From Penicillus capitatus (Eukaryota; Plantae; Chlorophyta), in assembly GCA_965649825.1 (NCBI GenBank), contig OZ287703.1, positions 987,722 to 1,051,721 on the forward strand: a stretch of DNA of 64,000 bases, given 5' to 3'. The stretch's first letter is position 1. Each line of letters opens with the position of its first letter. Both the position numbers and the translations under genes were made by a program. Under the pieces are notes generated by a model that saw only the letters and a list, made by a program, of their open reading frames with translations, was not told the DNA's origin and made no database searches. Below, piece by piece: positions 17 through 60,898 of this stretch.

Positions 17-2972
<2,956 letters not shown>

Positions 2973-14900: not shown

Positions 14901-16797
14901 CTGGGTCCTTGTCACATTTACATGCTCGGGCATCAGTTCAAACGTCATCAGTGTCGTCGCCCTCTTCATTCTTCTGCTGTCGGGATCGACTCGATTACAT
15001 ACAAGCATGTTGAAGACGGTTCTGCACTCCCCCCTGAAGTTCTTCCACACCAATCCGACTGGCAGAATCCTCAACAGATTCTCCAAGGACATGGGTATGC
15101 AGGACGAAGATCTGCCGTGGTTTTCCGTGGAAGTTATCACAGTGAGTCAGCTCAATTGCAGTTTTCGTCTCGTCACGTTTTCATTGCTGCAGAATGTTTT
15201 CGTGGCTGTGAGTACAGTGTGTTTGGTATGCATCGCTCTGCCATACATGCTGATTTTCTTCGTTGCCATTTCTTTCATTTTCCGTTATTATTTGCGTCGC
15301 TACGTTGTGACATCGAGAGAAGTCAAAAGATTCGATGGCGTCACACGCTCACCGGTCTATGCCATGTTTTCTGAAAACATAAAAGGACTCTCAACGATAA
15401 GAGCATACAACTGTCAGGAAGATTTTCACAACCGTTTCATGGAGAGTCTGGATCTCAATGGGTCTTGGTTAATGGCTTTCTTGCTGACATCTCGATGGAT
15501 TGGCTATCGATTAGATGGCATCAGTGCGTCAGTCATGCTGTTCTCCGTTACCTCTGCCATCATCCTTGCCAAATCAGTGGGCTCAGTCGCAATAACTAAC
15601 TAGTCGTGCATCATCCGAAATGTTTGCAGGTGTCACCGGAAGTGCTGGGTCTAGCATTGACATACGTAATATCGTTGAGTGGCATGCTTCAGTACACAAT
15701 GCGACAAGCAGCGGAACTGGAGAATACAATGACAGCTGTCGAGAGGAACATGGAGTACACTCAACTCGAACAGGAACCGCCAAGGTAAGCAGCCTCCATC
15801 ATTCATCTCGAGACGTGAAAGCGAATCCGTGACCAGGGCATCAGAGGGAGGCGGACAGGCGCCAGAGGAGTGGCCGACCGTGGGGAGCATCGAGTACCTC
15901 TCCGTGACGGCGTCCTACAGACCTGGACTGGATCCCGTTCTGAAGAACCTCTCGTTCGTCATCCCAGGAGGCAGCTCGGTCGGCATCGTCGGCAGAACCG
16001 GCTCAGGAAAATCCTCCCTGCTGCTGACGCTGTTCAGGTCTCCTGCTTGGACACATCTTTGATCTCTGCATCGAGAAGACTTCTGTGTGCAGGCTGATCG
16101 ACGTAAACGAGGGGGAGATCAGGATCGACGGCGTGGACACGTCCAGCATCGGCATCGACGTTCTGAGGAAGCAGCTGGCAGTGATCCCACAGGACCCGGT
16201 GCTCTTCGGAGGTGATCATCTCTGATGTCTCTGCCGGCCACTGACTCGATGCGACGCAGGAACGCTGAGGTCGAACCTGGATCCGTGGAGCGAGCACAGC
16301 GACGCCAGGGTCTGGGACGTGCTGCAGAAGGTCTGCCTCGGTGCAGTGGTCAGGGACATCGGCGGACTGGAGGCACTCATCTCGGAGAACGGAGGCAACC
16401 TGAGTGTCGGGCAGCGCCAGCTTCTCTGTCTAGCCAGGTGATCTTCCATCTGTCTGCTTTCCGTTTCCTCTCATCACTGTTCTTTGACAGGGTCCTCCTC
16501 TCGGATGCCAAGATCGTTGCGCTGGACGAGGCCACAGCGAATGTGGACAGAGGCACCGACTCCTTGATACAGAACTCTCTGCACTCGCTCATCACTAAGA
16601 ACGACAAGACTCTCCTCATCATCGCCCACCGGATAGACACCGTCATGGACTGCGATCTGCTGCTCGTCTTGGAGGACGGAGAGCTGGTCGAGTTTGACGC
16701 CCCGGGAACTTTGATGGCGAAGGAAGGCGGAGTCTTCGCCGGAATGGTTAAAGCAGCAAAAAAGTCTTCCGGAATTGGGTTAGCCGAAATCAGATGA
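11905..16797 (+). CDS. ABCC/MRP-type ABC transporter, copy B (full length, short form without an obvious TMD0), multi-exon
   Basis: TMD1 ([21 protein letters not shown]), NBD1 ([23 protein letters not shown]), TMD2 and NBD2 ([23 protein letters not shown]) reconstructed across short GT-AG introns. Confidence 0.93.
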
Positions 16798-16960
16798 ATG
16801 ATCTTTCTTTAGCGCCAGGCAACCAGTTTCATTGTTTATTATTCTATTCTATTCTAATCTGGACTCACACTATTTCACAATCGGTGTGTGGTTAGCAGCC
16901 GAACTATTTGTTTCCAATGTCGAATGGGATATCGATTCAGAAAGACTCTTGCTGTATTAC
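13830..16960 (+). repeat. Tandem duplicate of about 17-3136 (offset about 13.8 kb), continuing with indels to about 17170 vs 4140
   Basis: Near-identical exons, several introns and the 3' UTR; visible by direct comparison. Confidence 0.92.
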
Positions 16961-18581: not shown

Positions 18582-19277
18582 TCAGAGAGGAACGACATGG
18601 ATGACCAACGTTACCCAACTCTTGCCGTCATTCACACCACTGTGGTACTCGAATCCATCTTTGTCTCCCGCTCTGCTCTCCCCTCTGATGCGCAACTTCT
18701 CGTCATGCTGATAGCCTTGATACGTATAGTGGCATAGATGGAACCCACAGGACACGATGGAATCTGGGTCCATCAACTCTTTGCAAAGGGGACATGGTGT
18801 GTTGTGCAGCAATGCGCCCATGTTGAAGCCCCGCGATCTTAAAGTCGAACTGGCTCTGTCAAAGGAGCCGGAGAAGCCGAGAGGACTCCATGCCAATTGC
18901 TTATAAGCTTCGCAGTTCGCATTCATGCATCGACCCTCCAGATTGAAGCCCTGTCCAATGACTCTGTAACTTGGCGCGTTCTCTGTGAATCCTCTCTTGT
19001 TTCCATCTTTCATACTGGCGAAGTTGAAACCCAGATCGAAGACAGGGCCGCCTCCCCGCAACCTGAGAACCAGATGAATGCAGCTCTCATCTTCAATGCC
19101 GTAGTCCTTTAGACAGCGACTGTCATCCAGTTGTCGCCCTGCGTAAATTAAGCGCTGCTGATTGTATGGGATCTGCTCTGCTTCTTCTATTTTGTCTTTG
19201 ATATTGTCGACGGTGTCTTCAAGAGAGCAAGAGATAGAAATGGTGTTCTGAGTCAACGTCTTGATGAAGATCTTCAT
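18582..19277 (-). CDS. Ubiquitin-like domain (exactly 76 aa ending LRLRGG) fused to a 155-aa Cys-rich domain; single exon
   Basis: MKIFIKTLT...[11 protein letters not shown]...[17 protein letters not shown], then CMNANC, CPLC and CGFHLC motifs. Confidence 0.92.
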
Positions 19278-23113: not shown

Positions 23114-26100
23114 TCAGGCTTCGACGTCCGGAGGGTCGGAGATCTCCGGCTCTTCGGGCGTCGGACGTAACTTTCCAATCAGATGTTTAACTTTGTAGTC
23201 AATCCAGTGCATCAGAACGCAGAACATACCAGCATCGGCTGCAAAGCGCTCGTCTCGCTCCCTCATCTCGTATCTCAGGAACTTAGCTGCGAACCTGATA
23301 ATGTAGAAAACGAAAACAAAAAACAAGATAACATTCAGCAAAGCACACGCGACGGTAAGCAGCACACGAGTGAAGTTCTTTGGGTAGCTCTCGTCCTTGA
23401 GCATAGACGCTGCCAACGTCGTCGACAGTGACACGAAGAGAGACGCCAGTTCCATTCTGTTAAGGTCTTTGAAGTCCTCTCGGTACGGCTTCGCCAGAAT
23501 CTGAGCCAGGATAGCAAGCATGATGATGTATGCGACACCAGTGATCGGCAATCCGCTGTCAAACAGATGGGCGCAGAACACAAAGAAGGCGATGGTAACC
23601 TTCCTTGTTACGATAGCGATTTCCCAGTACACACGAAGATCCATTCTGTAAGAGCGGTAAAGGAATCCAGCGATCTGGTAAGCCCAGCCACGCTTGTAGA
23701 CGAGGTGCTGGAATGGACTCTTGAGGACGGAGATGAAGAGCACGATAAGGCCACCGTATACTGGACACACGAACGCAACGACCACTCCATAAACGAGTTT
23801 CCTGTGGTCGCCTGCGTAGCACTCCATCCTCGTGTCGACTGCCCAGTGCGTGTGCGTCACGTTAACTTTCGAGAAGTCTGCCAAGTCGTGCACGTCGACG
23901 CACAGGAAGACGCTCAGAGCAGTCTTTAGCACTGGCACGAGAGTGATATACCAGATGACCATCGCCGTAAGCAGACATCTCTTCGACACATAGCGGGGAA
24001 GTCTGTCGCTCTCGGGTCTCGCCGACTTCGTCGCCCAGAACAGGATCCAACAGAGAAACACGGCACAGGGGATGATGCACACGCTGACGACGAGCGCCAA
24101 CGCCGTCGGTTGCAAGGACAGGTCCTTTGAAGATAGACAAACGACGGAGCGTCGAATGCCGTCGGATGCGAGACCGCTAAACAATTCTGGAAAAAACACA
24201 ATAGTCGACAATCCTGGACTTTCGAGATTACGACCTCACCTCCGATTGTTGCCATAACGACGACCGGAAGCGCCCATTCGACGTCAAGGGAAGCCAGTAG
24301 AACAGTCGTTTGAACGTAACTTAGAGTGATCTGGAGAACAACGCGTTCAGTGCGAGATGAACGTACGGACTTGTTTGTACCTTAAACATCTCGACCGCCT
24401 TCCATTTTGCCAAGGTTTTTTCGGATGCGGGCAGTCCGAGGGCTTGAACCTATGGCACAATCATTCAGTAGGCGAGAAGTCGACGGTGTTCTGTGCCCAC
24501 TTCCGTCCGCGCGAGTGAAGACTCTCCTTCCGCCGATGAAGATGCCGTGCTCCGGTCACGAATCTGATGAGTGTTTCCGCGCAGAGCGCCGAGCGTGTCG
24601 TGCAGCGTGCCGTGGATCGTGGTGCTCGTCATCGCCAAGAGGATGATCGCCGAAGTCAGAATGTAGGAGACGTTGAAGAATCCCGTCAAGCACTCTTCGC
24701 ATTTCGATGACAGACCAGAGCCGAAGTCTTCTTCACAGGATCCACAAAGCGGACCCGTATGACCCTGTTGGAACAGAAAAGGAGAGATGATAAAACATTC
24801 GGAGACTGGAGAATGCGTTTTACTTCGGCACACTGAGCTTGTGCGTAGACTTCGATCCATTCTTCGTCAAAATCGCAGCTCGAGACCTCTTTGACCATGG
24901 CCTTCAAGTTCTCGGACCGGTCTTCAAACTCACAGGCAGAAGCTGGCAGGCATCTGTGAAGTTGATCCGAACAGGGCGTCATTTGCCAGTGGCCGTCGTT
25001 TGGCGTGATCGCGAGAGACTCGCAGTTGCCATTTTCGGGGCAGGGGAGGCAAACCTCCGCTTGTGGATGTAAGTTGTATGCCGTGGTGCCGCACTCCACA
25101 CAAGTTCCAAGTGTCGACATAATCTCGCCAACATAACAGCTTCGGACTTCGACGGTGACATCGACGTTTTCGATGGCCCCTTCTCCAAATTCTACCGTCA
25201 GCTTGTACTCTCCTGGAGGGGCGAAGCTTGTGACGGATCGAAAAGTGCCGGTCCATCGTTCCATTGGAACGATGATGGAACTGGACAAGAATGGCCCCGA
25301 TGGCGAGGACACGTTGGCTGCGACGGGGAGGTAGCTGATGGCAGGTCCCTGTCCTAGATCATCCAACAGTCTCACTCTTGCGGATGGTAATTCCGTGCCA
25401 CTGCTATATCCTTGTATCACACAGTTCTCGCCTCCGCTTATGCAAACAGAGTTGTTGGCATCCTCAATCGTCAGCTCTGCAGTTGCGGCGTATGTCGCGA
25501 CATCATGCCCGTAAGAGACAGCGGTATTGGCTTTCCACGACGAGCAGATGTCGTCAACTGATTCAAGGTAACCGAGGGCACGCCATTCCTTCTCCGCGTA
25601 GAAGCTCAGATCGGAATCTGGCGAAGCGTCGTTGCAGCGAAATCGAATAGCTTCTTTGTAGCCGGCGAAGACTGCTCCTCCTCCGACCCTCGCTTCATTG
25701 TCGCGGAACTGTGTTTCTACAAGAGCCATAGTGGGACAGTCGGTGCTGTTTGTCAAACATTCTTTGTTCTTTTCGCTGCAGACGAAGAAGAGTCCACCTA
25801 AAACCAAGTGTTGACAGAAGTATCATTCTTGCAAATCGATTGCCTACCTCCCAGATCAGCCGCATTATTCTCAAAGCGGCTACGGACGAACTGCAAGGCC
25901 AGACTCTGCTCGAATTTGGCGTCTAAGAGAACTGCACCACCATTGCCTCTCTTGGCCGAGTTCTTGCGGAACACACAGTTGGAGCACAGAATTGACGAGG
26001 ACCCGAGGCCAAGCACGCCACCGCCGTCGACTTCTGCCTCACAATGTGTTATGGAAAGATTGATCCCCTTCAAATGAGATCCATCCAACCAGATCGCTCC

Positions 26101-28882
26101 CCCGTTCATCGATCTTCCTTGAACAATGCTGGCGTCATTCACAATGATCGAGCTGTTTCCTGATGCCGATGCAAAACCGCCTGTGGCACCTGCGGAGCTC
26201 AAGGAGAAGTACGACTGTGTGATTCTGACAGTCGAGTTCACCGCGTACACGAAACCGCCGCTTGTGAGTGCGCCGCTGATAGTCGCATTCGTGCGCTTCA
26301 GCTTCACGCGCGAGTCCTCCGAGTACACGAAACCGCCGCTTGTGAGTGCTCGGTTGTTTCGTGCATCCGTGTCGACTGCCTTGACCACAGATCTCGACAC
26401 GAACATGAATCCACCCAACGTTGCGCTGTTATTGGTCGCGGTCGTGTGGTCCGCTTTGACCTTCGCGTCCCTTGCGAATATCAATCCACCTTGGTTCTTG
26501 GCGACATTTCCCATCGCACGGATGCTCGTTAGCGACACCGTCGATTTCTGTGCGTCCATAAATCCACCGTCGCCTGCTGCTTCGTTGTTGATGACGTCCG
26601 TGATCTCTAGGACCACGTTTGATCCAGCTGCATACATGACGCCGCCGTCACTCGTTGCGTTGTTGCGCATTGCACTTGTATACTTCAGGCTGACATTTGA
26701 GCTCTCAGCCCGCAAGAACGCGCCATACGATGCACTGTTGGCCGTGGCGTTCGTGTGCGCCAGCATCACATTCGAGCTAACTGCCATCAGAAATCCGCCG
26801 CTGATCTGAGCGTCGTTGTTAATCGCGTTTGTGTGCCTGAGCGTCACGTTCGATGCTTGAACCCATACGCATCCACCATCCGTTTCTGCGATATTGGCGA
26901 TCGCGTTTGTGTGCTCGATCGTTGCGATTGAGTCCTCCACGTACAAGAACGCGCCAGACGATGCTCTGTTGGCCGTCGCGTTCGTGTGCGCCAGCGTCAG
27001 TCTCGAGTTCTCTGTCTGAAGGAATCCGCCGTTTGATGTTGCGCGATTGCCAATCGCATCCGTGTGCTCCAGCTTCAGGTCAGAATTTCGTGCATACATG
27101 AACGAGATCCACTGCGCCTCGTTGTCGATCGCGTACGTTTCGGTTAGCTTCACCGTCGAGTTGTCTGCGTAGATGAAGCCGCCAGATCTTTTCGCGCTAT
27201 TGGCGGTCGCGCTTGTGTGGTCTAACGTCACATTTGAGACCCTGACGTCCAAGAACGCGCCATAGGCAGCTCTGTTGGCCGTCGCGTTCGTGTTCTTCAG
27301 CATCACTTTCGAGTTCTCTGCGCCGAGGAATCCGCCACGGCCATGTGCCGTATTGTTCAGTGCTATTGTGTGCTTGAACTCCAGCTCTGAGCCTTCCGCG
27401 TAAACGCAGCCACCCTCATCAGACGCGACATTGTCGTTGAACTCGGAGCGGAACACGGAAATCTTCGACGCTTCGGCGAGGATCACGGGTCCTGTAAGGC
27501 CTTCGTTTGCAACGAACGTGCACTTCTCCACTTTGACTGACGACTTTGTCGAATGAACACAGTGATGCTTCGTCTCTTCGTCGATTCTTGTACTCAGAAC
27601 ATTCCTTCGGAACGATGCATTCGACAGTGAAATGTCGCCTTCTAGGATACGAATAATGGTGAGGTTGTTTCCGGAAGCGGCGAATCCTCGCAGCTTGGTA
27701 CTTGACGAGATGTGTCCATAGAACAAGGAAGAATGCTGCTCATCCGCGTCGGTGACTCTGTTCCAGTAGCAGGTGCAATTATCCAGTCGGTTTTTTTGTG
27801 CAAGGTAAACACCGCAGGCTTCGCCTGAGCAGACATTCTCGGAGATCTCAACTTCGACCATCTTCAGTTCGGAACAGGATGGGGAAGACATTCGGAGTGC
27901 CGACGCTGCAGTCAGGTCGTTTTGTCGAAACGCTAAACGGCGCAAAGCCACGAGACCAGGAGTATCTTCAGTGTGGCACGCTGTCACCTTGATTATCGAC
28001 TGGGCTTCGTATGTGCCGTCGAATGCGCACCTCTCGATGATGAGATCGACAAAAGTAACGTTCATGGACCTACGAGCGAACAGAGAATAACTATCTATCT
28101 CACTCAAAGTTGTCTTACTCTACGAGAAAGAGTCCGGAGTTCTCGTAAGGACATGTGAATCTTGTCTTTGTGGTCGATCTAGAGAGGACGTCGTCAGGAG
28201 AGTCGGTGCTTTCGACTTGGGTGGCGAGGGTCAGTTGCCGCGGAATGGTGACACGCGACGACGGGCGCACAACGTCTGTCACGTTGAAAGAGATGATGTC
28301 TCCCTCTTTGGTGCAGTCGACGATCTTCTGCAAGTCGTTGTCAATTTCTCTTAGGACAACGCTGCTGACGAGCCACGTCTTGCCGTCTTCAGACGTGTAT
28401 CTGTCTTTGGCGTTTCTCGACAAGGTACATTTGGAACCTAACATATTCAGAAGCCATTTGAATGCGGCGTCTGCGCGAGACGTAAGAAGAGCCGAACCTT
28501 TAGCGGTTTCTCGTCTGGATGTGTCAGACTGCGACGGCGCGTGCTCTTCGCTGACCCTCTATAGACAGAAGACACGATGGTAAATGTCCGTGCCGCTGAA
28601 TGGCAGCAGGCGAATTCGAGACTTACATCTTGAGGGAGTTTTGTAGCGAGGTCGGCTGGCGATTCAGACGGTGCAGCTGGTGTGTTATCGTTCATTTCGC
28701 CTAAAACACAAGACAGCATAGTTGATGTGATGCGACGGAGCCAGCGTTGGAAAACCGTCCACAGCAGAAGCGGCATCTGGCGTACGCAGCAACGCGCGTT
28801 GAACAGCGCGCGTATGTCCGACTCCCTGCGCAAACGAGCAGAAGAGCAGACAGAGCTTGAGGCAAGAAAGAGAAGTTCGCAT
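23114..28882 (-). CDS. Large surface/membrane protein: signal peptide, Pmp-like/pectin-lyase-type GGA..N beta-helix repeats, Cys-rich region, multi-pass TM C-terminus; multi-exon
   Basis: Signal-like MRTSLSCLKLCLLFCSFAQG. A 769-aa ORF with about 17 GG(F/A)xxxxxSxVxLxxTxAxxNxA repeats. CVECG..CLPCPENGNC..C..GHTGPLCGSC. KITLSYVQ motif and several hydrophobic helices in 23114-24190. 5' exon boundaries are approximate. Confidence 0.8.
26120..27430 (-). repeat. Intragenic 75-78-nt coding tandem repeat array
   Basis: TGTTGGCCGT(C/G)GCGTTCGTG recurs near 26737, 26968 and 27273. GTACACGAAACCGCCGCTTGTGAGTGC recurs near 26245 and 26323. Confidence 0.85.
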
Positions 28883-30663: not shown

Positions 30664-33600
30664 TCACGGACGTAAGAGTTTCTTGAGGACCCTTCGCGTC
30701 GACTTGGAACATGAAAGAGCACTTGCAACACAAACAAGGTCAAAAGGCGTTTCTCCACTGTCGTTTGTTATGGTCTTCGAGGCCCCGGCATCCACCAGAA
30801 CCTGAAAATGCACTATTACACTATAAGATGCTGTTTCTGACGTGCCTTGGCTGTCTCTAACGCGCCGTTCGTCGATGCATCGTGAAGTGGAGTATCTCCA
30901 AACGCATCCGTTGCGTCGAGATAGGCATCTTTTTTGAGTAACAACTGTAGAAGGCAAAGTGAAAGAGAAGACGAGAGGGAATAGGCAAAAGCACCTTTGT
31001 AACCTTTGGGCTCGTTCTGGTTACGGCAATGTGAAGCGGTGTCTGTCCGATACTGCTCGCGCCGTCAACGTCGGCTCCGTGTTTGAGGATAATCTGCCAG
31101 TCGACAGTTTACGCCAATGCGGCAAGGACGTATATGTGCAACAAACCTCGACAACTTCGGCGTCCGAATAACGTGTTGCAAACAGCAGAGGCGTCCATCC
31201 AATGATATTGGCATGGTTGACTTTAGCTCCGTGCTTAAGGAGGATCTGGCGATCGAAACGTTCTGCCGAAAGGCAACGAAGCGGATGCGATACTCACCTC
31301 GATCATTTCGGCGTCTGCTTTACGCGCTGCAAAAAGCAGAGGCGTCCATCCTTCGTCTATGGCCTCGTTGACTTTAGCTCCGTGCTTGAGGAGAATCTGG
31401 CAAACGACAGACAGCTTCTGCCAATGAGGCAACGACGATGTTTGGTGCGCGACCCGACCTTGACCATTTCGGCTCCTGCGTAACGCGCTGCAAAATTCAG
31501 CGGCGTCCATCCATCGTTTATAGCTTGGTTGACTTTAGCTCCGTGCTTGAGGAGAATCTGACAGTGAACAGACGACTTCTGCCAATGAGGAAACGACGGT
31601 AAGTGTACAACAGACCTCGACAACTTCGGCGTCCGAGTAACGTGCTGCAGAAACCAGAGGAGTCCATCCATTGTCCTTGGCCTGGTTGACTTTAGCTCCG
31701 TGCTCGAGGAGAGTCTGACAGTCGACAGTTCTGTCATCGAGGCGACGAAGTGAATGCGTTACTCGCCTCGACCACTTCGGCATTCGAATGACGCGTTGCC
31801 AAAAGCAGAGGCGTCCATCCATCGTCTATGGGCTGATTGACTTTAGCTCCGTGCTCGAGGAGGATCTGGCAAACAAGAGACAGTTTCTCTCATCAAGGCA
31901 ACGACGTTTAATGCGTAACCGACCTCGACCACTTCGGTTTCTGCGTAACGTGCGGCAATATGCAAAGCAGTCCATCCATCGTCTATGGGCTGATTGACTT
32001 TGACTTCGTGCTCGAGGAGGATCTGGAAAACGCCAGACGGCTTTTGTCATCGAAGCAATGGCGTTTAATGCGTAACCGACCTCGACCACTTCGGTTTCTG
32101 CGTACCGTGCTGCAATATGTAGAGCCGTCCATTCATCGCCGTTAACTGATTTGACGTCTGCTCCGTACTCGAGAAGGATCTGGCAAAAGATAGACAGTTT
32201 CTACCTATAAGGCAACCAAATGAACGCGTTACGCACCTCCACCATTTCGGCGCCTGCATAACGTGCCGCAGAATGCAGAGGAGCCCATCCGATGTCGTTC
32301 TTTTGGTTGACATCCGCTCCGTGTTCGAGGAGGATCTAAGAACCAACGCTTGAGCACACGATCAAAATCGCTTTGTAGATTCACCTTCGCCACCTTCGCA
32401 TGTCCTTTCCCCGCTGCCAGGTGCAAAGGAGTCCATCCATCTTCGTTGACTGCATCGACGAATGCCTCATATTCCAGAAGAACCTTCAAGGCGTGAACAG
32501 AGAAATTTGATGGACAGAGACGAAGCATCTAGACTCTGTCATCCAGAGTGGATTCAGCCCAGAATAATACCTCAGTGCATTCTGACGTGTTGTAAAGCGC
32601 CGACCAGTGCAACAGAGCGAACCGTTCCGATTTCCAGTACCATGGCATTCGAACGAAGGACTTGTAGACGGAATCTGGATCCAGTGCCTGCAGAAGAGCT
32701 GCTTCTAGCTTCGGGGCATCGTCATCTTTTATACAGTGATATGCTTCCTACAGAACCGTAGCGCAGTCCAGAATGATCTTTATTGTCAATTCAACCTTAT
32801 TCAGCTCTTTCTGAGATAGCTCCGTCAGCTGTTTGCGTTCCTCTTCGATTCCCTGCCGTTCGGACTTCTCGTTTTGCGGTTTATCATCCACAGGCTCATC
32901 CGCTGCTGAAAATCCCACGCCATCTTCGTCATCGTGCGAAGGTTCGTTCATAACTTCCGACGAATCTGGCACCTGCACTAAGAGATCAGGACAATAGAAG
33001 GAGATTGATCGAATGGTTCACCTCTTCTTCGTCGATTATTTCGAGAATCCAATCTCTGAACGCGTCTATTCTTGTGTAGACAGAAGGCGATGCATCATCG
33101 CAGTCTTTGGATCTCACGGACGTCACACCGATGAGCAGGTCGCGTTCTGGACTCCCCTCCGATACGTCTCCCTCCGATCTGTCAGGAATCAACAACAGAC
33201 CGCCGGAATCTCCTACGACAAGGGTAAATCAGCAGAAAGCGTCATCTCATGCCATTCAGAACCTTCGCATGCGGTTTCTCGCGAAAATCCGGCACAAATC
33301 GAGTGACGGTTGACGGAGTGTCCCAGAAGCTTCTTGCAGACATGATGCTTCACATGTACCAGGCCATTCGTCATCTGCAAAGAACTTGGATGCTTTCCGT
33401 TGTTGCTCAGTCCCCAACCGAGTGCGGCGAAGAGTTTGCCATTACGGAATTCGCCTCGCTGAGTGTCCATCGACGGCAGCGAGCGATTCGCTTCCTTGTT
33501 TAATTTGACGACGGCGATATCGTATCCGTCGTTCACGTCGCCCGTCCAAGATTCAGGCCAATAGCTTTTCTCTCCCTTCAGTACCTAGCAACACGCATTT

Positions 33601-34095
33601 CGGCAGGAGAGTAAACAAACGTGGACATGTGTTACTTTATTGGAGTCGTTTGCATCAAGCGTGTGGACACCGCAGCGAACAATCGGATGTCGGCCGACAC
33701 TGTGCGGAGAGGCGGGGTCGACACAGTGTGCTGCAGTAATGACCCATTGCTGTCGAATGAGCACTCCGCCACAGCGGCGAAGTCCATCGTCTTGTGCAGA
33801 GAGAATACAAATATAGGGGAACCGTCCCTCAGGTGCCACTTCCGCATCCTGCAAAACGAAAAGGCTACGACACTACTGGAGAGACGTACGTGTTTACGAT
33901 AGTGGAGGGACTTGTTTCCCATTCGGAGTCTAGCTTTCCCGACTTTTCTGAACAATCGCCCGTGTCGGACTGGAGTGCTAACCGATAGTCGTTCTTACTC
34001 TGGATATGCGGATTGGCGTCGGCGTAGAAGAGCAGCACGGATGGCAAGAGGAGCAGAAGTGCAGTAGCTTTGGTCGGCAACGAGGAGAGCGACAT
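30664..34095 (-). CDS. Signal peptide + trypsin-like (S1) serine protease + acidic linker + about 12-13 ankyrin repeats, one spliced gene
   Basis: Catalytic motifs TAAHC, DIAVVKL and spliced G|DSGG. In-frame GT-AG splicing links WILEIIDEEE to VPDSSEV..ELNK, then EAYHC..SECTE, then VLLEYEA..GWTPLHLAA. Stop TGA at 30664-30666. Confidence 0.82.
30846..32483 (-). repeat. Tandem array of 11 exon+intron units (99-nt phase-0 ankyrin exons, about 150-157-bp period)
   Basis: Each exon reads xLLxHGAxVN....GWTPL..AARY..AEVVE. Central introns resemble each other. Confidence 0.9.
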
Positions 34096-35180: not shown

Positions 35181-35891
35181 ACTGCTCGCTGAAACGACAG
35201 CGACGACAGGTGGATGCAAGACGTATAGGCGACGGTGCCAGTACGCGCTGCGTCCGGCGTCTTCTGTTCTGTGAATCGTTCAGCATGACGATGTCTGCCT
35301 TCATGGAAGATTCCTCATTTGGAACCAGAAACCAGCTAACCGCGAAATAAACCTTCTTCCTGGGGTCGGTTGAGACGTACCTGTGGCGTTTGCCGCTGTC
35401 TATACCCGTCTAAGGACCTGGAGAATACAGGTATACCTGATGAGGCAAAGCTCCGACGTTGTATCGCGCTTAAACGATGCCCAGTCGCAAGAGGGAAGTG
35501 CAGACCATGCATGCATGGATGTATGATCCTCAGACACAGCCATGACAGGTTTGTCTACCGAAGACTGAAGCATCACGTTTCGTGTGATATGTATGTGTGA
35601 GAAATGGACTGGTGGGTCATCATTGTAGATGGACGTATCATGAAGTCATTCCTGAACATCTGACAAGACATCCCGGCCGTGTTGATCACGATCAGATGTC
35701 GCTGCCCTACGATGTGATTGATGCGTTGTCATCTTATTCCGCACCGCGTCGCAACAGTTTAGGTAGCTGACGTTTGTCGCCAGAAGAAATAAAAACGAGT
35801 ACAAAAACGAAAACGATTTCACGTTCCTTTGATTTTTGACCTACCCGTAGTACTCTGCCGAACGATTTTTTCGGTTTGCTCGAGTGGCGCC

Positions 35892-36684
35892 ATGGCAGAC
35901 AACAGCTTTACTTTGGCTTCTTTTCCCTTCGATGGCACCTGCAAGTACAGTCGCAACGGCGACACGATACTCAAGTTCAGTGACGGCTCTTACTTAAAAA
36001 CGCACGCCGCTCTACTGAAGATGGCATCTCCTGTCTTCGATTCGATGCTGACTGACTGTACAAACACGAAGACACTTGTGTTGGAGAAGACCTCTCGTAA
36101 AACATGGGTTCACATCCTGAACCATCTCCATCCAGCAGGATCACTCGTTTTTTCCAACTTTGATCGCGTCAATGGATTCGCCACGGATCTGCAAGAGGAT
36201 CACACATACGAGATAAAAGCGAAGTGCGACGCTTTGTCCGATATCCTCGAACAGGCAAGAAAGTTCAAGCTGGATTCTCTGTTTGCTTTCATGGACGATC
36301 TGTTGTTTTCTCTTTTCCCCAAAGAACTGGATTCCAACCTTGCACAGAGGCTTGCTAATAACAACCGCTCTCACGGCCGTCTCTATAACCTTGCACTCCG
36401 ATTTGAGTCAGAATTGCCTAAGACCAGTGAGAAAGTCCGTGGTAACATTATTAAGTACCTGCAGAATACCAGCCAATGCCGCAGCTGTGGAGCAAGACGC
36501 TTCCAAAGTTCATCATATCGTCAAAGAGTAAGAATAATAATCTACTCTTCTCGTTTTAGGATGTTTTGTTTAGAATCAGTCCAGTGAGGCCGAGAAGAAT
36601 TTTGCAGTGAACCTCATCGATGAAGGAAGTCAGGAATTCCACAAGAAGCTGATCAAGGATCTCATAAGCTCTATTCTGTTTTGA
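35892..36684 (+). CDS. BTB family protein B7 (exons 35892-36527, 36574-36684)
   Basis: Family motifs. No intron at the canonical position; a 46-bp phase-0 intron near the 3' end restores the C-terminal LIDEGSQEFHKKLIKDL motif. Confidence 0.78.
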
Positions 36685-39084
36685 CTTGTGTTTCGAACCT
36701 CTCCTGAGTGAATCTCGCAATTGCGTCGACACTTTAGATGCATCGTTTGTCGAAAATTAAGTTTCTGTGAGTTTTCTGAAGTGCGGGTTTTGCAGAAACA
36801 TGATCGAATACAATTCACATTGATAAGACGTGTTAGCAATCTGTGTCTGCGCTTTTGAACGTAATAGCTGTTGGTTGCCATTGCCAGGAATTGACAGGTC
36901 ACTTGATAGGAGGTTCCTACAAGCTGCTCCTACTTATGTCCAAGATTAGAGATCATCCGGCGTAGAGTGGATTTCGGAGAAGGCCCTAGCCGTCGTGTCC
37001 ACCTATCTTCATAGCCACAGTGCTTCATCGCACAGCGGTTTTGAGCACCTATGCTATCTCTTTAGTAATCTGTCATTTCTGGAAGTGAGCTGTAGCAATA
37101 CCAAAAATCGTCCAAGCGGTCGAACAAGTGATTTCAGATTGTCGTATGTGTGAAGAGCTTACTTGCACTAGTGATCGTTTAATGGAGTAGATAAGAAATG
37201 GCATCAAATAGATAACAAAGTGCAAAACTCTTTCCTCTCGTATGAGTTGAAGACGGCGTGTTCCTGGATCACTCGTGAGAACTTTCGTTGTTGATTGAAT
37301 TCGACTGAAAGATTTGTTGTGTGTTTTAAAGTCGTCAACGGGTTTATGATCATCTTTGAGATGTGCTGACTCGCAGGTGTCAGAGACGCAGAGAGTGGCA
37401 ATACATGTGTGAGGTACCTTCAGAATTGCAGTAGTCTTCTCGATAAACAAGTTTTGGATCAGTGCCATCAAGAACGGCAGTGTCATCTTTTTAGGGAAAC
37501 AGAGGAAGACATACTGGAAGGCCTGTTCTCCCCTCAGGCGTTTCTCTATAGGTGATATCGTCTTGTCGTTGTCCAGAAATCACACAGTCTGTTCTGAGCA
37601 AAGACGATCTGAAGTAAGGAAACGGATGATGCATTCTGTCGAATCGAGTGTTGCGCCATCAGGCAGACAACAACCAGTAGTATTCACGATACGGTGAGAG
37701 CGAGGCAATCAACAGATCCCAAACCCTAATACTAAAAGCTGCAAGACACCTAAAGTTCTTTTCAGACCACGAGGGCTCGACGTGCCAAGACTTGATCGAA
37801 CGAGACTATCAATCCTTAAACGCAGCAACGATACATCTGTTTAGAAAGATGCCATTAAGGGTGGTTTCTGGGCAGTGCTTTGTTCTTTGAGATATGTGGG
37901 AGACTATTGCGACGCTTCAGACCAAGATGGCCATCGATTCTATCTTGACACATAGATGAACCCATTCCGACCATACAAACGGTAAGAACACGGTCATTGC
38001 CAGATTGGGTCTTATCGATCCACACGTCCCTTGCGATCTGGACGTTCTGTTTGGCCTGACGGATCACAAATTTAAAGAGACAACGAAGCACGAAGCAAGT
38101 CTCGTAAACAAACGAGTAATTATACGTTGAACCCGAGGAGTCACCTTAAATACTTAACCCATGTGAACCTCTATCGTGCATGTGATCATCGGTCACTCGT
38201 CCTGGAGCGAATTGTTTCTAATACGACAATGGTACTAGCCACTAGGGGACCACTAGAGTCCCAATCCACTTCGAAAACCATATGTAAATTTAGCCACTAT
38301 AAGAGGCATGAGGAGACAGAAAGCTCTTACGTCGTCTATTACAAATAGCGTTCTTCTTTCATTAGCAACGATTTTCATCCTTCACGGTTCACGTCACATC
38401 CGTCCCCGTCGAAAGCACCTGTCGCTTACACAAGGACAGTTGCTGAGTGAAGAAACGACGTCCGGCATGAAACGAGATGAATGTTCCGTCCACCACGCCA
38501 CTATCCCATCTGTCCCAAACTTCGAATGTCGTACATGGCATGAATGGATGTGTAGAACGATGCAGCTACGCCATCAGCTGCGTGACCCCAGACGGACAGG
38601 TCACCACTTCTGTCGTTGTCTTCCACTGTCGAGCCAGTTAGCAAAAAGACAGACTTCGGTTGAAAGCCGAATGGGCGTGTACAACGTCTGGCACGTTCCA
38701 AAGAATATTCGTCCACTTTGCGATGACGCCTCGTATCGTACTAGAGAATAAAACTTGCAGGCAGTTTCGTTGCGATCTTTTTCAGACAGTGAGGCCCGTG
38801 CGTCTATGTATCTTCTCGGAACCCGTCCTTTCTCTTAACCTAAAAGTAAGAACCATTCATCTTTCCACGTTGACTGTTCAAATGGACGGTTGCTTTTAGG
38901 TCAAGAGAGACCGCACGTCTCTTATCCCAAAGGGGACAGCGTGTCATGTGCGGCTGACCTCGGACTCAGCAAGTCATGACAGTAACTAGAACGTCACAGC
39001 ACATCGCACCTCCGACGTCGTTGGCAGAAACAATAAAGCGACGCGATAGGGGAATTGATAACCTATCAAATGCTGACGTGTATC

Positions 39085-39105
39085 CGACCTTGTCCATAAA
39101 TACTC
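39085..39105 (+). promoter_or_regulatory. TATA-like CATAAATA about 65 bp upstream of the B8 start (also upstream of B9 near 41292), preceded by TGACGT
   Basis: Position and conservation between the B8 and B9 promoters only. Confidence 0.3.
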
Positions 39106-39158
39106 TTAGGAAACGGCGGTTGATATTTGTCAGCTGCCCGAGTTGTTCGAGTCCTACG

Positions 39159-39926
39159 ATGACGGACAACACGTCGACTGCCGAGAAGAGTTCTCTTCCG
39201 GACTATTTCCCATTTGACGGCACCTGCGACTACAGCCGCGACGGCGACCTTACGCTCAATTTTGCCGACGGTTCTTTTCTGAAGACTCACGCCGCGCTAC
39301 TGAAGATGGCGTCGCCCACTTTCAAAGCGATGCTCACGGACTGCACAGAGACTGGAACGGTGACTCTTGAAGAGACATCGAGAGAGGCATGGGTTCTCAT
39401 CTTGAACTGCCTTCATCCAGGCACTCGAAATCCCTTCTCGAAGTTCGATCCTTTCAGACAGACGGACTTATTGGTAAACGAAACTAGTGGTCTCAGTCAT
39501 TACAGAGATATTCTATAGGCTGAGGTGTTGGGACAATCGAGAAAGTTCAAGTTCATCCCTGTGTTTGAACAAGTGGATTACCTTATTTCCACGAATGTTT
39601 CGAAGAAATTGCCTCATAGTCAAAGCCTTCCAACTGGTTTTAGCGATCCCAATGCTGTGCACCTGCGTCTTTACAGCCTTGTACTACAGTTTGGGACGGA
39701 GTTGACGACAGCCGCTGATGATATACTTAAACATGTCGGGGCAGTTCTGCACTGTTTTATCACCAAACGTGGATATGATGTTTTCGGCTCGCAGTTTTCC
39801 TCAAACTCTTATCATATGCTGCCGAGGAAGGATGTTCTGATGAACCTTTTAGAGAAGGCCGATGTTGGTTTTCACCAAAAGCTCTTAGCATATCTGATGA
39901 AGGACTGTAGTTACATAAGGGGCTGA
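39159..39926 (+). CDS. BTB family protein B8 (exons 39159-39473, 39519-39926)
   Basis: Family motifs; 45-bp phase-0 intron; exon 2 begins AEVLGQSRKF. Confidence 0.82.
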
Positions 39927-45817: not shown

Positions 45818-47441
45818 ATGGCGGCGAATGAAAAGCTGGCGGATCTCTTGTCGCAAAAACAGTTCTTGTGGAAGGTCCTCGTCCACCTCATCGACAGCGG
45901 ACTCCATGAATGCCGTCGCGTTTGCCGCAAATGGTACGAAGTATGCGACAAGCTCCCAGCGAAACTCAGCCTCAGTACATGCGTCGATCGCTGCGTCGAG
46001 TCGGACGTGTTTCCAAATGCCGTTTCACTCAAATTCGATGCTGGCGTCTTTTTGACCCATGACTCTGTGGAAAACCATCTTCTGCCATGCCTGTCTAAAC
46101 TGAATCGTATCGCGCGCCACGAGTTCTGCACAAAGGAATGGCCACTTGTCCACTTTCGGCCGAATTGTCTGACGTCCTTCAACGCTGTGCGATCTCTCTC
46201 GGTCACTGGACGGGACGAGTCTGCTTTTTTCGATTTTCTGGAGACGCTGAGATGTCTAACGGGCTTGACGGAACTGGAATTGCGCACGGAGGCAATATAC
46301 ATCAATGCCACGGATTTGGCTCCAATTACAGAGATCGAAGAACTCAGAACTCTCAAAGCAAGCTCATGTTTCATTGTCGATCGAAACGACGACTTCATCT
46401 TCGGCACCCAACAACAATTGACAAAACTCGAGGTTCGGCACGAATTCTTTTCTGCTTCCCAAAGCACAACACTGCAAGTAATGCCTGTGCACCCCCTTTC
46501 CATTTTTGGACTGTATTTTTTTCTAGTCGCTCTATCCGCACGCTTCAAATCTGCGCTCTCTGGCACTTAATGAAGCATTGAACGGAGGATTGAGCATCGA
46601 AGACTATGACACGCTGAGACACCTCTCACAGTTGGAGCATCTTTTGCTGGAAAGCATTTTTGTGGAAACAAAAGGCTTTGTCAGTGTCTTGGAAAATTTG
46701 AGTAGACTGACCGCATTGGAGATCATTCATACGGTCGTTTCGGAGCTTCCACTCGTACTGGATTGCATTTTCGCGATGTCAAAGCTGAGGACGCTTACAC
46801 TCAAACCACGTCGCCTGCACCTTGATCACATCTGCGCACCGACCCACACGAGCCGGATGCAGCTGACAAAGCTATCTTGGCAGTTTGATGCCTCCTTACT
46901 CAAGCTGATGGACCTAACCAGAATAGCGCACTTCGACATTGAGCTTGGAAAACAGACCTGTCATGAGGACCTCGTTCGCGCATTGGATTCGATGCCGGAT
47001 CTTCAGTTTCTCTGCATCTACAGCGAGGCGAAAGGACAGCTCGTGCCAAGCCATGTCTTAGCGCGGATGACAAAACTGAAGGTGCTGGAAGTCGGAGGAG
47101 TGTACACGGACGAGGCCATCTACCAAACCTTAGCCACGTTGCCAGAATTGACCGATCTCAGTTTAGACTTTCATTCTCGAAAGTTCTTGATCCCGACCTT
47201 CATGTATCTCCATACCCAGATCAATCTGCTCACGAATCTGAGGTCTCTGAGGTTTATGAAGGCTTACCCTATAAAACCTTACGCTCTGTTGGAGAGTCTT
47301 TCGGGAGAGCACCTGAAAAGACTCCAAACACTCTATGTATCCTCTGCAAACTTGAACGATGATCGTCGTGCAGTCCTATTCAGAAGGTTTCAATCGCTCC
47401 GCTGTTTGTCCGACGGCCGTGCGAGCGGTTTTGTCCTATAA
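45818..47441 (+). CDS. F-box-like + leucine-rich-repeat protein (exons 45818-46477, 46527-47441)
   Basis: N-terminal FLWKVLVHL..ECRRVCRKWYEV resembles an F-box. Repeated LxxLxxLxL motifs (LTGLTELEL, LSQLEHLLL, LSRLTALEI, LTNLRSLRF). 49-bp phase-0 intron. Confidence 0.72.
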
Positions 47442-47853: not shown

Positions 47854-49291
47854 CTAACCGAAAATGAATCGTTGGACATAAGAATCAATCGATTTACGAT
47901 ATTCCTGTGCAACCTTCTTGGCAATTTCTTCGACAACAGTTACGAACGTCGCATCATGAAATCTCGTGAACGCCCTGCCCTCTTCTGATGTGATCGGGGC
48001 AATCTTTTGCACTCTGAGATACTGATTCGGTTGGACGTTGGGATTCGAATAGTAGATATAATCTGTTAAAGCTGACATTCCATCGATTCCACTATCTAGG
48101 GTCAGCCCCAGCCATGCGTTCTCGTCAAGCCAACGGACTGCCCCTTCATTCGCCAGCCCAAGGCGACTAAACGAGGCACGTCCATTACCGATCGAGAGCA
48201 AAGCACTGCTTCCGATACCTGGAGCTCCAGTCTCGGCCGCGACAAAATTACTCGCCAGCAATTCCGTCGTTGCTAGTGGATTAACTCCATCGATCATGAT
48301 GAACTCGCCAATGTCATTGCCGACTCGGGATACAATCTTTGCCGCATTGAGTGCAGGTACTGAGCTCGTGACCACGCCAATGTCTTTGAGATAGTAATTC
48401 TTGCCTTCCTCGAATGTAAAATCCGGTGCGAAGCGTCCATTACTGGCAGGAAGCGGTCTCGGCCCGGAACGCACCATCAATCGAGCGGCAAACGTCACTG
48501 ACGGCTCTCTGAACTTATTCTGAATGAAATAGACTCCCTCTGATGCGATCAGGTCATAGGCAGGAAGGATAACAGAGGTGTCGCAGTCCTCCAACGTTGT
48601 ATTTCCATAGAAAGCCTCGAGGGTGCGTTCCAATCCGTCTGACAGATACAGAGGCGTCAGGACACCTAGTGCGCTGGGATTTGTGACATCCAGTGGCGTC
48701 TCTGCTTTGAGATTGATGGATTCCGTCGGATAGATGGTGCTGCCGAATTCGATAAAGAGGATGCGAAGGGCCTCAGCGCCGCCGGCGACTATCACCCCGT
48801 ACTTAGCCACAATGTCGGGTTCTTCGAGGACAGCACGTACAGCACCCTGACCGCCACGCGAGGCGAGATACAGAGTCGTCCAGCCACCGGCCGAGATACT
48901 GGTCATACAGTCGAAATAGTCAGCGAGGTTGATATCGAAAGCATTGATGTTGTGGATGTGAGTGACAGGGAGCAGTAGGTGTGGGTGCTGAACGAGATAT
49001 TTTTTTATGGACTGTTCGACTTCGATGAGAATCGTCACCGAGAAAATGGTACAGAGAGCGCCTCCGCCCACGGAGAGAATCGTTTTAAAAGTACGGCCAG
49101 GCGGTCTGCCGATGAGCGGCCTGCGACGGAAAACCCAAAGTCACTCAACCTTCTGTCTTAGACCGTTAAACGCACTTTCCGGTGGATGAGAGCCTTATCT
49201 GCATATGATAACGACCGTTCGCGTCATTAACGGCATGCGCCGAAAGGCACAAAGAAACAAAAACAACAACCGTGCAGAACTTCGTTGCCAT
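47854..49291 (-). CDS. Secreted patatin-like protein with degenerate catalytic motifs (exons 49291-49176, 49120-47854)
   Basis: Signal peptide exon spliced via a 55-bp phase-2 intron. ILSVGGGALC, LADYFDCMTSISAG, GLERTLEAFYGNTTL, MIDGV and LLSIGNG align with patatin blocks. Confidence 0.85.
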
Positions 49292-50002
49292 AATGCTCGC
49301 CGAAATGACAGCGACGACAGGTGGATGCAAGACACATAGGCGACGGTGCCAGTACGCGCTGCGTCTGGTGTCCTCTGTTCTGTAAATCGTTCAGCGTGAC
49401 GATGTCTGCCTTCATGGAAGATTCCTCGTTTGGAACCATAAACCAGCTAACCGTGAAACAAACCTTCCTCCTGCGGTCGGTTGAGACGTACCTGCGGCGT
49501 TTGTCGCTGTCTATACCCGTCTAAGGACCTGTAGAATACAGGTATACCTGATGAGGGAAGGCTTCGACATTGTATCGCTCTCAAACGACGCCCAACCGCA
49601 AGAAAGAAGTGCAGACCATCCATGCATGGATGTATGATCCTCAAAAACAGCCATGACAGGTTTGTCTACCGAAGACTGAAGCATCACGTTTCGTGTGATA
49701 TGAATGTGTGAGAAATGGACTGGTGGGTCATCATTGTAGATGGACGTATCATGAAGTCATTCCTGAACATCTGACAAGACATCCCGGCCGTGTTGATCAC
49801 GATCAGATGTCGCTGCCCTACGATGTGATTGATGCGTTGTCATCTTATTCCGCACCGCGTCGCAACAGTCTAGGTAGCTGACGTTTGTCGCCAGAAAAAA
49901 TAAAAACGAGTACAAAAACGAAAACGATTTCGCGTTCCTTTGATTTTTGACCTACCCGTAGTACTCTGCCGAACGATTTTTTCGGTTTGCTCGAGTCGCG
50001 CC

Positions 50003-50823
50003 ATGGCAGACAACAGCTTTACTTTGGCTTCTTTTCCCTTCGACGGCACCTGCAAGTGCAGTCGCAACGGCGACACGATACTCAAGTTCAGTGACGGCTC
50101 TTACTTAAAAACGCACGCCGCTCTACTGAAGATGGCATCTCCTGTCTTCGATTCGATGCTGACAGACTGTACGGAGACAAAGACACTTGTGATGGAGAAG
50201 ACCTCTCGTACGACGTGGGTTCATATCCTCAACCATCTCCATCCCGGCGGAACACTCTCTTTTTCAAACCTCGACTGCGTTAATGGATTTGCTATGAATC
50301 TCTCTTTTGGTATGCAAATCCCAGGGAAGAACGCCAACGAGACTGACAAGATGAAAGCGAAATGTGACACTCTGTCCGATCTGCTCGAGCAGTCGCGAAA
50401 ATTCGAGTTTGACTCGCTGTTTACCTTCCTGGACGATCTATTGTTTTCGATTTTTCCCAAGCAACTGGATCGAGCTTGCCTTACACACATGGCTGCTGAT
50501 GTCAACCGTCTGCACAGCCGTCTCTATATCCTTGCACTCCGATATGAGTCCAAACTTCCCAAGACCGGCGGTATAGTCCGTAGAAACATCATCATGTACC
50601 TGCAGAATCCTGGCCAGTGGTGCAATAGTGCAACAAGACACAGCACGTGGACCCCGATCTCTCAACAAGTAAGAATAATCTACTGTTCCAGGCTTAGGAT
50701 CATGGTTTATTGTAGAATCAGTCCAATCCCGAAAAGAATTTTTTAGTCGGTCTCATTGACGAAGGAAGTCATGAATTCCACAAGAAGCTGATTAAGGATC
50801 TCATAAACTCGACTCTGCTTTGA
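50003..50823 (+). CDS. BTB family protein B12 (exons 50003-50668, 50716-50823), paralog of B7
   Basis: Family motifs; 47-bp phase-0 intron near the 3' end. Confidence 0.78.
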
Positions 50824-60136: not shown

Positions 60137-60898
60137 ATGGTGCGTAGAACTAGCTCTCAAGCGAAGTGTCGACAAGGAATGTATTTTCCGTTCGACGGTA
60201 ACTGCGACTGTAGTCGCGACGGAGACATTGTGCTCACGTTCAGCGATGGCTCTCAACTCAAAACGCACTCCATGCTGCTGAAAATGGCTTCCCCCGTCTT
60301 CGCTTTGATGCTGACGGAATGCACAGACGCGGCGACAATTGCCCTTGAAGATACGTCTCCAGAAGTGTGGCTGCATATCCTGAATCATATCCACCCAGCG
60401 CCGCCGTCTCTGTCCCCCGGATTGGAACTCTTCAATGATGCAAACAAGATTGTAAGCCATTCTCTGTCTCGAGTGCCTTCGAAGCGCAATGGAATCTAGG
60501 TCGCGCTCCTGCATCAAGCAGTTAAGTACGATTTCAAGAACCTGACGGATTCTATAGATGAGGCTATCAAGACGATGGTCCCTGGACCATCGCCCAACGA
60601 AATGGCGAGTGCAAAGTTCTATAAACTAATTGAAGATTACAGTTTCGACGAAGAGAGAGTTAACCTATTTAAAGCTGCGTTTGAGTTCGAAGCTTTTCTG
60701 CCGAAGAGTGTCGAGAAAATCCGGAAACATGTTGTTGAGTATTTCAAGTTTTTCGCCGGAGTCAAAGCAGGGAAGTACAGGGGTCATCAGAATCCCGTCT
60801 TTCAAAGAGAAGCTTTGCAAGAGATGTTGCAGAGAGCCAGCATCGAATTTCACAAGCAACTCTTAGAAGATTTGATAGCGGAAGGGGGTATCTTCTGA
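60137..60898 (+). CDS. BTB family protein B13 (exons 60137-60451, 60500-60898)
   Basis: YFPFDGNCDCSRDGDIVLTFSDGSQLKTHSMLLKMASPVF; 48-bp phase-0 intron; exon 2 begins VALLHQAVKY. Confidence 0.8.

Follow-up and report, generated by a model that had tools for sequence, protein, structure and literature searches.

The DNA analysed here, referred to as the window, is a 64,000-nucleotide (nt) stretch of contig OZ287703.1 from the green alga Penicillus capitatus. It is eukaryotic nuclear DNA of about 50% G+C, with coding regions interrupted by short introns. On the minus strand, from 34095 down to 30664, it carries what on sequence grounds is a single gene; the predicted product combines a signal peptide, a serine protease of family S1A and a long series of ankyrin repeats in one protein. 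A prediction made from the sequence alone (hereafter the original prediction) had placed the gene at 30664-34095, and these coordinates are exact: the ATG lies at 34095 and the stop codon ends at 30664.

Gene model and domains

Before splicing, pieces of the protease and many ankyrin repeats are spread over three minus-strand frames between 34095 and 30664. Splicing by hand at GT/GC...AG sites yields a coding sequence of 2505 nt and 834 residues with no internal stop. The start codon is the first ATG past an in-frame stop. The 17 introns are 44-87 nt long; 15 are GT-AG and two GC-AG, and the splice sites of all 17 are usable. The exon joins are based on splice-site logic, conservation among paralogs and the transcripts of relatives. 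The features of the gene are:

30664..34095, minus strand: whole gene, ATG at 34095 to TGA at 30666-30664; 18 exons, 17 introns, 834-residue product
33898..34095, minus strand: exon 1; predicted signal peptide (residues 1-27, 34095-34015), then about 39 residues of propeptide, among them Cys48
33636..33848, minus strand: exon 2; N-terminal part of the protease with Cys92-Cys108 (C42-C58) and catalytic His107 (33728-33726), from the elastase/chymotrypsin alignment
33263..33584, minus strand: exon 3; middle of the protease with Asp159 (33521-33519), Cys220-Cys234 (C168-C182), Thr241 at position 189 (33275-33273) and Cys243 (C191)
33022..33212, minus strand: exon 4; GDSGG with Ser247 (33207-33205), Leu250 at position 198, Arg278 at position 216 (33114-33112), Cys282 (C220) and the end of the protease domain
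32973..33021, minus strand: intron 4, 49 nt; junction between the protease and the remainder, at the same position in the paralogs
32796..32972, minus strand: exon 5; acidic linker, residues 309-367
32571..32747, minus strand: exon 6; helical N-terminal cap and degenerate first ankyrin repeat, conserved in all five paralogs
30846..32483, minus strand: ankyrin exons 7-17; eleven 99-nt exons with one 33-residue repeat each (Pfam Ank, E-value 3.9e-91)
32483-32385, 32335-32237, 32179-32081, 32022-31924, 31865-31767 and 31714-31616, minus strand: first six of the 99-nt exons
31557-31459, 31396-31298, 31245-31147, 31093-30995 and 30944-30846, minus strand: last five of the 99-nt exons
31074..32290, minus strand: tandem DNA repeat with a period of 157 nt (exon plus intron), 7.8 copies, 74% matches (Tandem Repeats Finder)
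30664..30801, minus strand: last exon; final half-repeat, Cys813/Cys820 pair, C-terminal KKLLRP and stop

The one-frame fusion proposed in the original prediction is confirmed as a gene model, since the 834 residues run without an internal stop and are matched by both Pfam Trypsin and Pfam Ank. It had also stated that no stop follows the protease domain. This holds only with the 49-nt intron 33021-32973 spliced out; if intron 4 is kept in the mRNA, the frame closes after 11 codons (VNHSINLLLLS, the chain ending ...EEEVNHSINLLLLS before the stop). The least certain splice of the model is the exon 1/2 join. The 3' end of intron 1, if read as coding, translates to ...VLQD, comparable to an LLQD motif found upstream of the protease in the family. 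This option was rejected as it brings a frame change and a stop in the window copy; the intron stands. The donor of the last intron lies at the same position in six gene copies, with GC in four and GT in two; as both forms are kept at one position, the intron is likely to be a genuine GC-AG intron.

Pfam Trypsin (PF00089) matches residues 69-300 with 118.4 bits (cut-off 20.6, E-value 5e-34), and the match spans profile positions 5-220 of 220. Among solved structures, the best alignments of the domain are to elastases, chymotrypsin and complement factor D (E-values about 1e-19). By its predicted fold, the protease is a clear member of S1A. In the elastase/chymotrypsin alignment the catalytic triad is His107 (TAAHC), Asp159 (YDIA) and Ser247 (GDSGG), equivalent to chymotrypsin H57, D102 and S195; the intact triad of the original prediction is supported by this alignment and by invariant or near-invariant columns in the family. 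Gly193 of the oxyanion hole and Asp194 are intact, and the cysteines of the three canonical, predicted S1A disulfide pairs are present: Cys92/108 (C42-C58), Cys220/234 (C168-C182) and Cys243/282 (C191-C220). Across a 27-member family alignment H57, D102, C42, C58, C168 and C182 are invariant, while C191, C220, S195 and D194 are at least 90% conserved.

The substrate pocket differs from that of trypsin. The window copy has Thr189, Arg216 and Ser226, against Asp189, Gly216 and Gly226 in a trypsin-type S1 pocket. Most relatives have either Asp (a trypsin-type pocket) or Ala/Gly at position 189, together with Gly216; the Bryopsis members have Ala or Gly at 189. Conservation of Gly216 reaches at least 90% in the family, and paralogs P0001-P0003 keep it. 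Position 198 is Pro in the family and Leu in the window copy; one Bryopsis relative likewise has Leu198. Because of Thr189 and Arg216, the earlier label 'trypsin-like' is accurate for the S1A fold and not for specificity. The activation region of the window clade also departs from the family. It reads S-T-I and, across the exon 1/2 join, D-A-E-V-A-P, with no basic residue ahead of the Ile; relatives have R/K-I-V/A-G-G.

The N-terminus has the pattern of a signal peptide: an n-region MSLSSLPTK, an h-region ATALLLLLPSVLLFY (mean Kyte-Doolittle hydropathy 2.8 over 11 residues) and A-D-A before the likely cleavage site. The propeptide of about 39 residues follows directly. Paralogs A and C have kept the hydrophobic N-terminus, as have most full-length relatives. 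The pattern, the A-D-A site and the conservation in paralogs support predicted entry into the secretory pathway, as was implied by the word 'secreted' in the original prediction. The linker it described as acidic is indeed so: 22 of residues 303-366 (64 in all) are Asp or Glu, and the net charge is about -16. The interval between the protease and the ankyrin repeats is free of hydrophobic 19-residue stretches in the model, and the same is true of 25 of 26 relatives. With a working signal peptide, the absence of a transmembrane segment between the domains would leave the whole chain luminal or extracellular. A transmembrane segment between the domains, which would make the ankyrin repeats cytosolic, was considered and rejected for the window gene; a strong stretch was seen in relative P0113 alone. 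In P0113 (Ostreobium quekettii scf_693.4), residues 297-315 of the protease-ankyrin interval form the 19-residue stretch VFYLATVVVAVLMVVLVSG (mean hydropathy 2.64). This could be a membrane-spanning variant with cytosolic ankyrin repeats or a gene-model artefact.

The ankyrin array is matched by Pfam Ank_2 (416 bits, E-value 3e-127) and Ank (294 bits), with 11 separate Ank stretches. Counting the G-x-T-P-L motif gives 12 repeats, to which a degenerate N-terminal capping repeat is added; the 12-13 repeats reported earlier therefore hold. All eleven 99-nt exons are bordered by phase-0 introns of 49-62 nt. The eight internal ankyrin exons share 68-86% pairwise identity, and the terminal repeats are divergent caps. 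Neighbouring introns of the array are clearly related; the first halves of array introns 3 and 4 (32080-32023 and 31923-31866) hardly differ. The tandem repeat at 31074..32290 is, judged by its sequence, the recently expanded core of the array. In the eight internal repeats Trp5 and Arg13 are fixed and Tyr14 occurs in six; positions 1-3, 9-10, 14-16 and 32-33 are variable. The variable set presumably takes in most of the positions lining the concave binding face of designed ankyrin proteins. The domain has a net charge of -20. Its C-terminal cap holds the Cys813/Cys820 pair; a second pair, Cys372/Cys424 in the N-terminal cap, is not conserved among paralogs.

Paralogs and the Bryopsidales family

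Five paralogs are found in the ENA assembly ERZ25074695, whose contig ctg340476_38x_l (944,726 nt) contains the window. A 20.9-kb contig has three of them in tandem, and the other two are on a contig of 614 kb. There is no second gene copy within the 64-kb window. All five have the order protease, linker, ankyrin repeats on one strand, with shared intron positions and one repeat per exon. They differ from the window gene in array length, with 4-10 ankyrin exons against 12. All five end in LLRP followed by the stop, and four have the C-terminal Cys pair. In paralogs P0001-P0003, intron 4 can be read through in frame without a stop.

Identity to the closest paralog is 73% in exons and 64% in introns; at codon positions 1, 2 and 3 it is 0.75, 0.82 and 0.66. 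Measured against paralog A, the ratio of nonsynonymous to synonymous substitution rates (dN/dS) is 0.18-0.44 for exons 2-7. The protease exons fall between 0.27 and 0.44 (exon 2, 0.27), the linker exon 5 is at 0.32 and exon 6 at 0.18; exon 1, with the signal peptide and propeptide, is at 0.9. By these ratios the protease, linker and ankyrin exons are under purifying selection. Paralog C (L004 9497-9689) passes from frame 2 to frame 3 inside its first, signal/propeptide exon; it may be a pseudogene, or there may be an extra intron or an assembly error. Its contig has 16x coverage compared with 38x for the window contig, which would fit a haplotig or an origin in a related strain.

More distant relatives were collected by an exhaustive HMMER search with the protease domain; the best 150 matches were kept and clustered at 50% identity. 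Among these 150 are at least 26 distinct relatives with C-terminal ankyrin repeats, and both Pfam Trypsin and Pfam Ank match all 26 that were aligned. The named ones with both domains are all from Bryopsidales: Bryopsis sp. KO-2023, Caulerpa lentillifera (two) and Ostreobium quekettii (several). Examples are GMH36826.1 (Bryopsis sp. KO-2023, 742 residues, 11 repeats), CAD7703549.1 / UniRef100_A0A8S1JBT6 (Ostreobium quekettii) and g4815.t1 (Caulerpa lentillifera). The window protease is 33-42% identical to those of the named relatives. These relatives, with the best named match of a neighbouring ABC transporter, point most probably to a siphonous ulvophyte as the source, and at such identities not one near any that has been sequenced. 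A single 7.4-Mb scaffold of Bryopsis sp. KO-2023 carries seven family members, of which six have ankyrin repeats. Many of the best protease-domain matches (P0064, P0065, P0068 and P0070 are examples) are proteins of great length in which 4-14 S1 domains follow one another in tandem; the highest-scoring one is from Lepisosteus oculatus (spotted gar). Their high total score is explained by the number of domains and not by closeness.

Five features characterise these Trypsin-Ank proteins: a predicted signal peptide, an S1A domain, a linker free of transmembrane segments, C-terminal ankyrin repeats and a Cys motif after the repeats. The model has all five, and so do most of the 26 relatives. The tail after the last repeat has two or four Cys across the family, and the linker is acidic, proline-rich and extensin-like, or carries an added Cys-rich module. 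The last type is seen in P0006, P0008, P0009 and P0011, in which an extra module of about 60 residues and six Cys lies between linker and ankyrin repeats, after a proline-rich extensin-like linker. Its pattern is C.C...G.SG...T.L.GC...L......CY..S...C.......LFPGA.W..C, and it has no Pfam match. The window gene has the longest array seen in the family, with 12-13 repeats compared with 2-11 in relatives; together with the 4-10 ankyrin exons of the paralogs, this bears out the earlier description of the ankyrin module as variable. A query made of the last three repeats and the tail, aimed at other secreted ankyrin fusions, returned generic ankyrin proteins only.

In several relatives the fusion is a single uninterrupted open reading frame (ORF) on contigs of 2.2-2.7 kb. 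Genomes of this kind are intron-rich; these contigs are therefore likely to represent spliced mRNA. One of them (L002, 2409 nt) has a 56-nt leader, an ORF at 57-1847 and 560 nt of trailing non-coding sequence. Another relative is represented by four overlapping full or near-full assemblies from different sources with the same fused ORF, and by a fifth, short one that covers the ankyrin end only.

In databases, family members are labelled 'hypothetical protein' or 'Peptidase S1 domain-containing protein'. The literature search found no paper on S1-ankyrin fusions, including in the full text of the Bryopsis genome preprint and the Bryopsidales phylogenomics preprint; the former does not mention ankyrin, trypsin or protease. 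The original prediction did not recognise the architecture as a characterised family. That stands in so far as no publication was found; the architecture is not a one-off, as a multigene Bryopsidales family has already been deposited. By sequence comparison, the window gene is a member of this unnamed family of hypothetical proteins.

An AlphaFold2 model was made for a 742-residue Bryopsis homolog, P0097, from a 26-sequence alignment; Arg216 and the acidic linker of the window copy lie outside that model. The mean predicted local distance difference test score (pLDDT) is 83 and the predicted template modelling score (pTM) is 0.59. The pair of protease barrels is predicted with confidence, as are about twelve helix pairs (pLDDT above 90); the Cys-rich tail is of moderate confidence and linker residues 295-306 are of low confidence (pLDDT below 50). 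The best Foldseek matches of the solenoid are 12-repeat segments of AnkB and AnkR and designed ankyrin proteins. The model has no confident docking of the ankyrin repeats on the protease or its active site, at a pTM of 0.59.

Function and alternative explanations

The function leaned towards here, with restrained confidence, is that the ankyrin solenoid serves as an exosite for a partner or substrate, aiming or anchoring a zymogen-type S1A endopeptidase of the secretory pathway, and that it evolves fast by means of its symmetric exons. The signal peptide would bring the entire chain into the endoplasmic reticulum, and the array would act outside the cytosol (in the lumen, vacuole, wall or medium). 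As an exosite, the array would tether or aim the protease, as PDZ domains do in HtrA and CUB/Sushi modules in complement proteases. Unequal crossing-over among the 99-nt phase-0 exons would alter repeat number with the frame kept, and the binding module could evolve fast. Since each repeat is one such symmetric exon, repeat number can change without loss of frame, which would account for the 4-12 repeats among the paralogs; the layout is a clear example of frame-safe change in repeat number. The secretory part of this proposal is supported by the family-wide Cys motif after the last repeat, by the disulfide cysteines and by the extensin-like linkers of some relatives. Proline-rich extensin-like linkers are typical of green-algal secreted proteins.

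Several observations weigh against the exosite proposal. The window copy has Arg216 for a near-invariant Gly216 and Thr189 in place of Asp189, and its mature protein is predicted to begin with I-D-A-E-V, a terminus unlike the usual I-V-G-G and shorter by one residue. These three features make the activity and activation of the window protease uncertain; the enzyme may have unusual specificity or be impaired, despite the purifying selection on its exons. The signal peptide was assigned by hydrophobicity and the -3/-1 rule only. The searched collections contain no transcript or peptide of the window gene; the close matches there (47-56% identity) are unspliced ORF calls from paralogs. The AlphaFold2 model of the homolog gives no information on partner binding or contacts between domains (pTM 0.59).

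The same data can be read in other ways. The array might act inward, as a latency, autoinhibitory or folding module that keeps the protease silent up to cleavage of the acidic linker. Such cleavage would be easy, given the length, acidity and probable disorder of the linker; the linker of the Bryopsis homolog has a pLDDT below 50, the structural neighbours include AnkB/AnkR repeats solved with their own autoinhibitory segments in the groove, and the I-V-G-G activation motif is degenerate in the window clade. However, repeat number (2-12) and linker type vary widely while the protease is conserved, which is hard to fit to one fixed intramolecular docking, and the homolog model has no confident packing between domains. 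One version would place the acidic linker in a groove of basic charge on the ankyrin repeats. It was given up, as an ankyrin domain with a net charge of -20 would not attract an acidic linker electrostatically. An inward-acting module is thus considered doubtful, and the terms 'sensor-effector' and 'autoinhibitory' used in the original prediction are speculation. It is less probable still that the window copy is catalytically impaired or re-purposed (a pseudo-enzyme, or one of very narrow specificity) and that the protein is chiefly a secreted ankyrin scaffold. The Arg at the mouth of the S1 pocket, Leu for Pro198, Thr189 and the I-D-A-E-V terminus all point this way. Against it, His, Asp, Ser, Gly193, Asp194 and the three disulfide pairs are intact, the protease exons are under purifying selection (dN/dS 0.27-0.44) and every intron still has usable splice sites; moreover, Leu198 recurs in a Bryopsis relative and Ala/Gly189 in Bryopsis members.

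Two further alternatives concern the gene product and its route. The fusion would be an artefact of hand splicing if the locus made two products, a protease ending in retained intron 4 and a separate ankyrin protein. Retention of this 49-nt intron does lead to a stop after 11 codons, Met316 lies early in the linker exon and no cDNA of the window gene was found in the searched collections. Yet the order protease-linker-ankyrin occurs five more times in the assembly with the same intron positions, intron 4 is in frame and free of stops in P0001-P0003, and transcript-like contigs of relatives hold the fusion as one ORF; an ankyrin-only product would also lack a signal peptide while having the conserved C-terminal Cys motif of the family. 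Two separate products are accordingly very improbable. The last alternative is that the hydrophobic N-terminus is not a working signal peptide and that the fusion acts in the cytosol. Ankyrin repeats are overwhelmingly cytosolic or nuclear, which is the point in its favour. It is difficult to reconcile with three canonical S1A disulfide pairs, a conserved C-terminal Cys pair, an n/h/c pattern with A-D-A that is conserved in paralogs and relatives, and extensin-like proline-rich linkers in relatives; a cytosolic protein is hardly credible.

The exosite proposal for the window protein can be set beside several known systems. The closest are the other Bryopsidales Trypsin-Ank proteins, which share its signal peptide, S1A domain, linker, ankyrin repeats and Cys tail and are likewise multi-copy and clustered. 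They differ in having a proline-rich linker, Asp/Ala/Gly189 with Gly216 and a four-Cys tail; the window protein has an acidic linker, Thr189 with Arg216 and a two-Cys tail. HtrA/DegP/DegS proteins (S1C) are also chymotrypsin-fold serine proteases that function beyond the cytosol, and their C-terminal protein-binding module serves to recruit substrates or to regulate activity. They have PDZ domains in place of ankyrin repeats, form oligomeric cages, and lack a zymogen propeptide and the S1A disulfides. The window protein has no PDZ match, and its Trypsin_2 score (23.9 bits) is under the cut-off of 27.6. Mosaic S1A proteases (C1r/C1s/MASP, clotting factors and insect CLIP proteases) are secreted zymogens whose accessory modules set their targets, and form duplicated, often clustered families. 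They carry disulfide-rich modules (CUB, EGF, Sushi, kringle, CLIP) on the N-terminal side, in contrast to the C-terminal alpha-helical ankyrin solenoid of the window protein, which belongs neither to this group nor to HtrA.

For the solenoid itself, the comparison is with AnkR D34, AnkB repeats 13-24 and designed ankyrin repeat proteins, which resemble it as 12-repeat solenoids and bind extended peptides along the concave groove. Unlike the window protein, they are cytosolic and have no protease, signal peptide or cysteine cap. Latrotoxin-type spider venom proteins, which are among the Foldseek matches, also have a long ankyrin array active outside the producing cell. They have no protease domain, form pores and are of animal origin, and the homology is confined to the repeats.

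Ankyrin repeats are the textbook cytosolic protein-binding scaffold. If the family does send ankyrin arrays through the secretory pathway, it would provide a natural extracellular ankyrin binder coupled to a disulfide-bonded S1A enzyme. To our knowledge, S1A proteases are scarce in green plants; the expanded and clustered family of Bryopsidales is therefore likely to be a lineage-specific invention. Each Bryopsidales alga is one giant cell able to withstand wounds, grazers and resident bacteria, which makes the Trypsin-Ank family a reasonable candidate for wounding or defence. A bolder version, offered tentatively and thought rather unlikely, is that these genes form a clade-specific, fast-evolving recognition-and-cleavage system of coenocytic algae, extracellular or vacuolar. 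The exon-duplicated ankyrin repeats, in tandem gene clusters, would recognise proteins exposed only by the mixing of compartments or the entry of foreign cells, as with a wound, a sap-sucking grazer or endophytic microbes, and the protease would then act on these proteins. Were this true, the family would be an innate-immunity or wound-response module with an ankyrin sensor and an S1 effector. RNA interference works in Bryopsis (PMC12961179), so the family can be tested there.

Other genes in the window

No tRNA genes were found in the 64-kb window. Four paralogous plus-strand ORFs (35829-36587, 38976-39518, 49940-50746 and 59678-60499) share the motif FPFDG(T/N)C..SR.GD..L.F(S/A)DGS.LKTH..LLKMASP(V/T)F. 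One of them has a weak BTB/POZ match (22.3 bits, cut-off 20.5). They are a dispersed local BTB-like gene family flanking the protease gene.

Two tandem copies of an ABCC-type ABC transporter lie at 1-3000 and 12600-16800 on the plus strand, with ABC_membrane and ABC_tran pieces split by short introns. ORFs 1367-1966 and 14677-15603, like 2385-2972 and 16225-16797, are near-identical over long stretches; the best named relative is from Caulerpa lentillifera. An intron-free ORF of 231 residues at 18582-19277 (minus strand) has an N-terminal ubiquitin domain (90 bits) and a Cys/His-rich C-terminal half that matches no family.

Three adjoining minus-strand ORFs of 769, 373 and 365 residues occupy 23114-28107 and have no Pfam match. 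The first contains Asn/Ala/Gly-rich repeats of about 20 residues (...N.TA.AN.A..GGF...) with the look of a parallel beta-helix, the second is Cys-rich, and several hydrophobic segments occur in the third; the three have the appearance of a single large repetitive protein of surface or membrane type. Related ORFs at 47854-49071 (minus strand) and 61865-62899 (plus strand) have a common C-terminal motif, ...F(I/V)..FIFG. The latter has a sub-threshold match to patatin-like phospholipase (22.9 bits, cut-off 27.7), while the former has no Pfam match. Finally, two consecutive leucine-rich-repeat ORFs lie at 45818-47441 (plus strand; LRR_14, 34 bits, below the cut-off of 40), and an antisense ORF of equal length overlaps the first of them.

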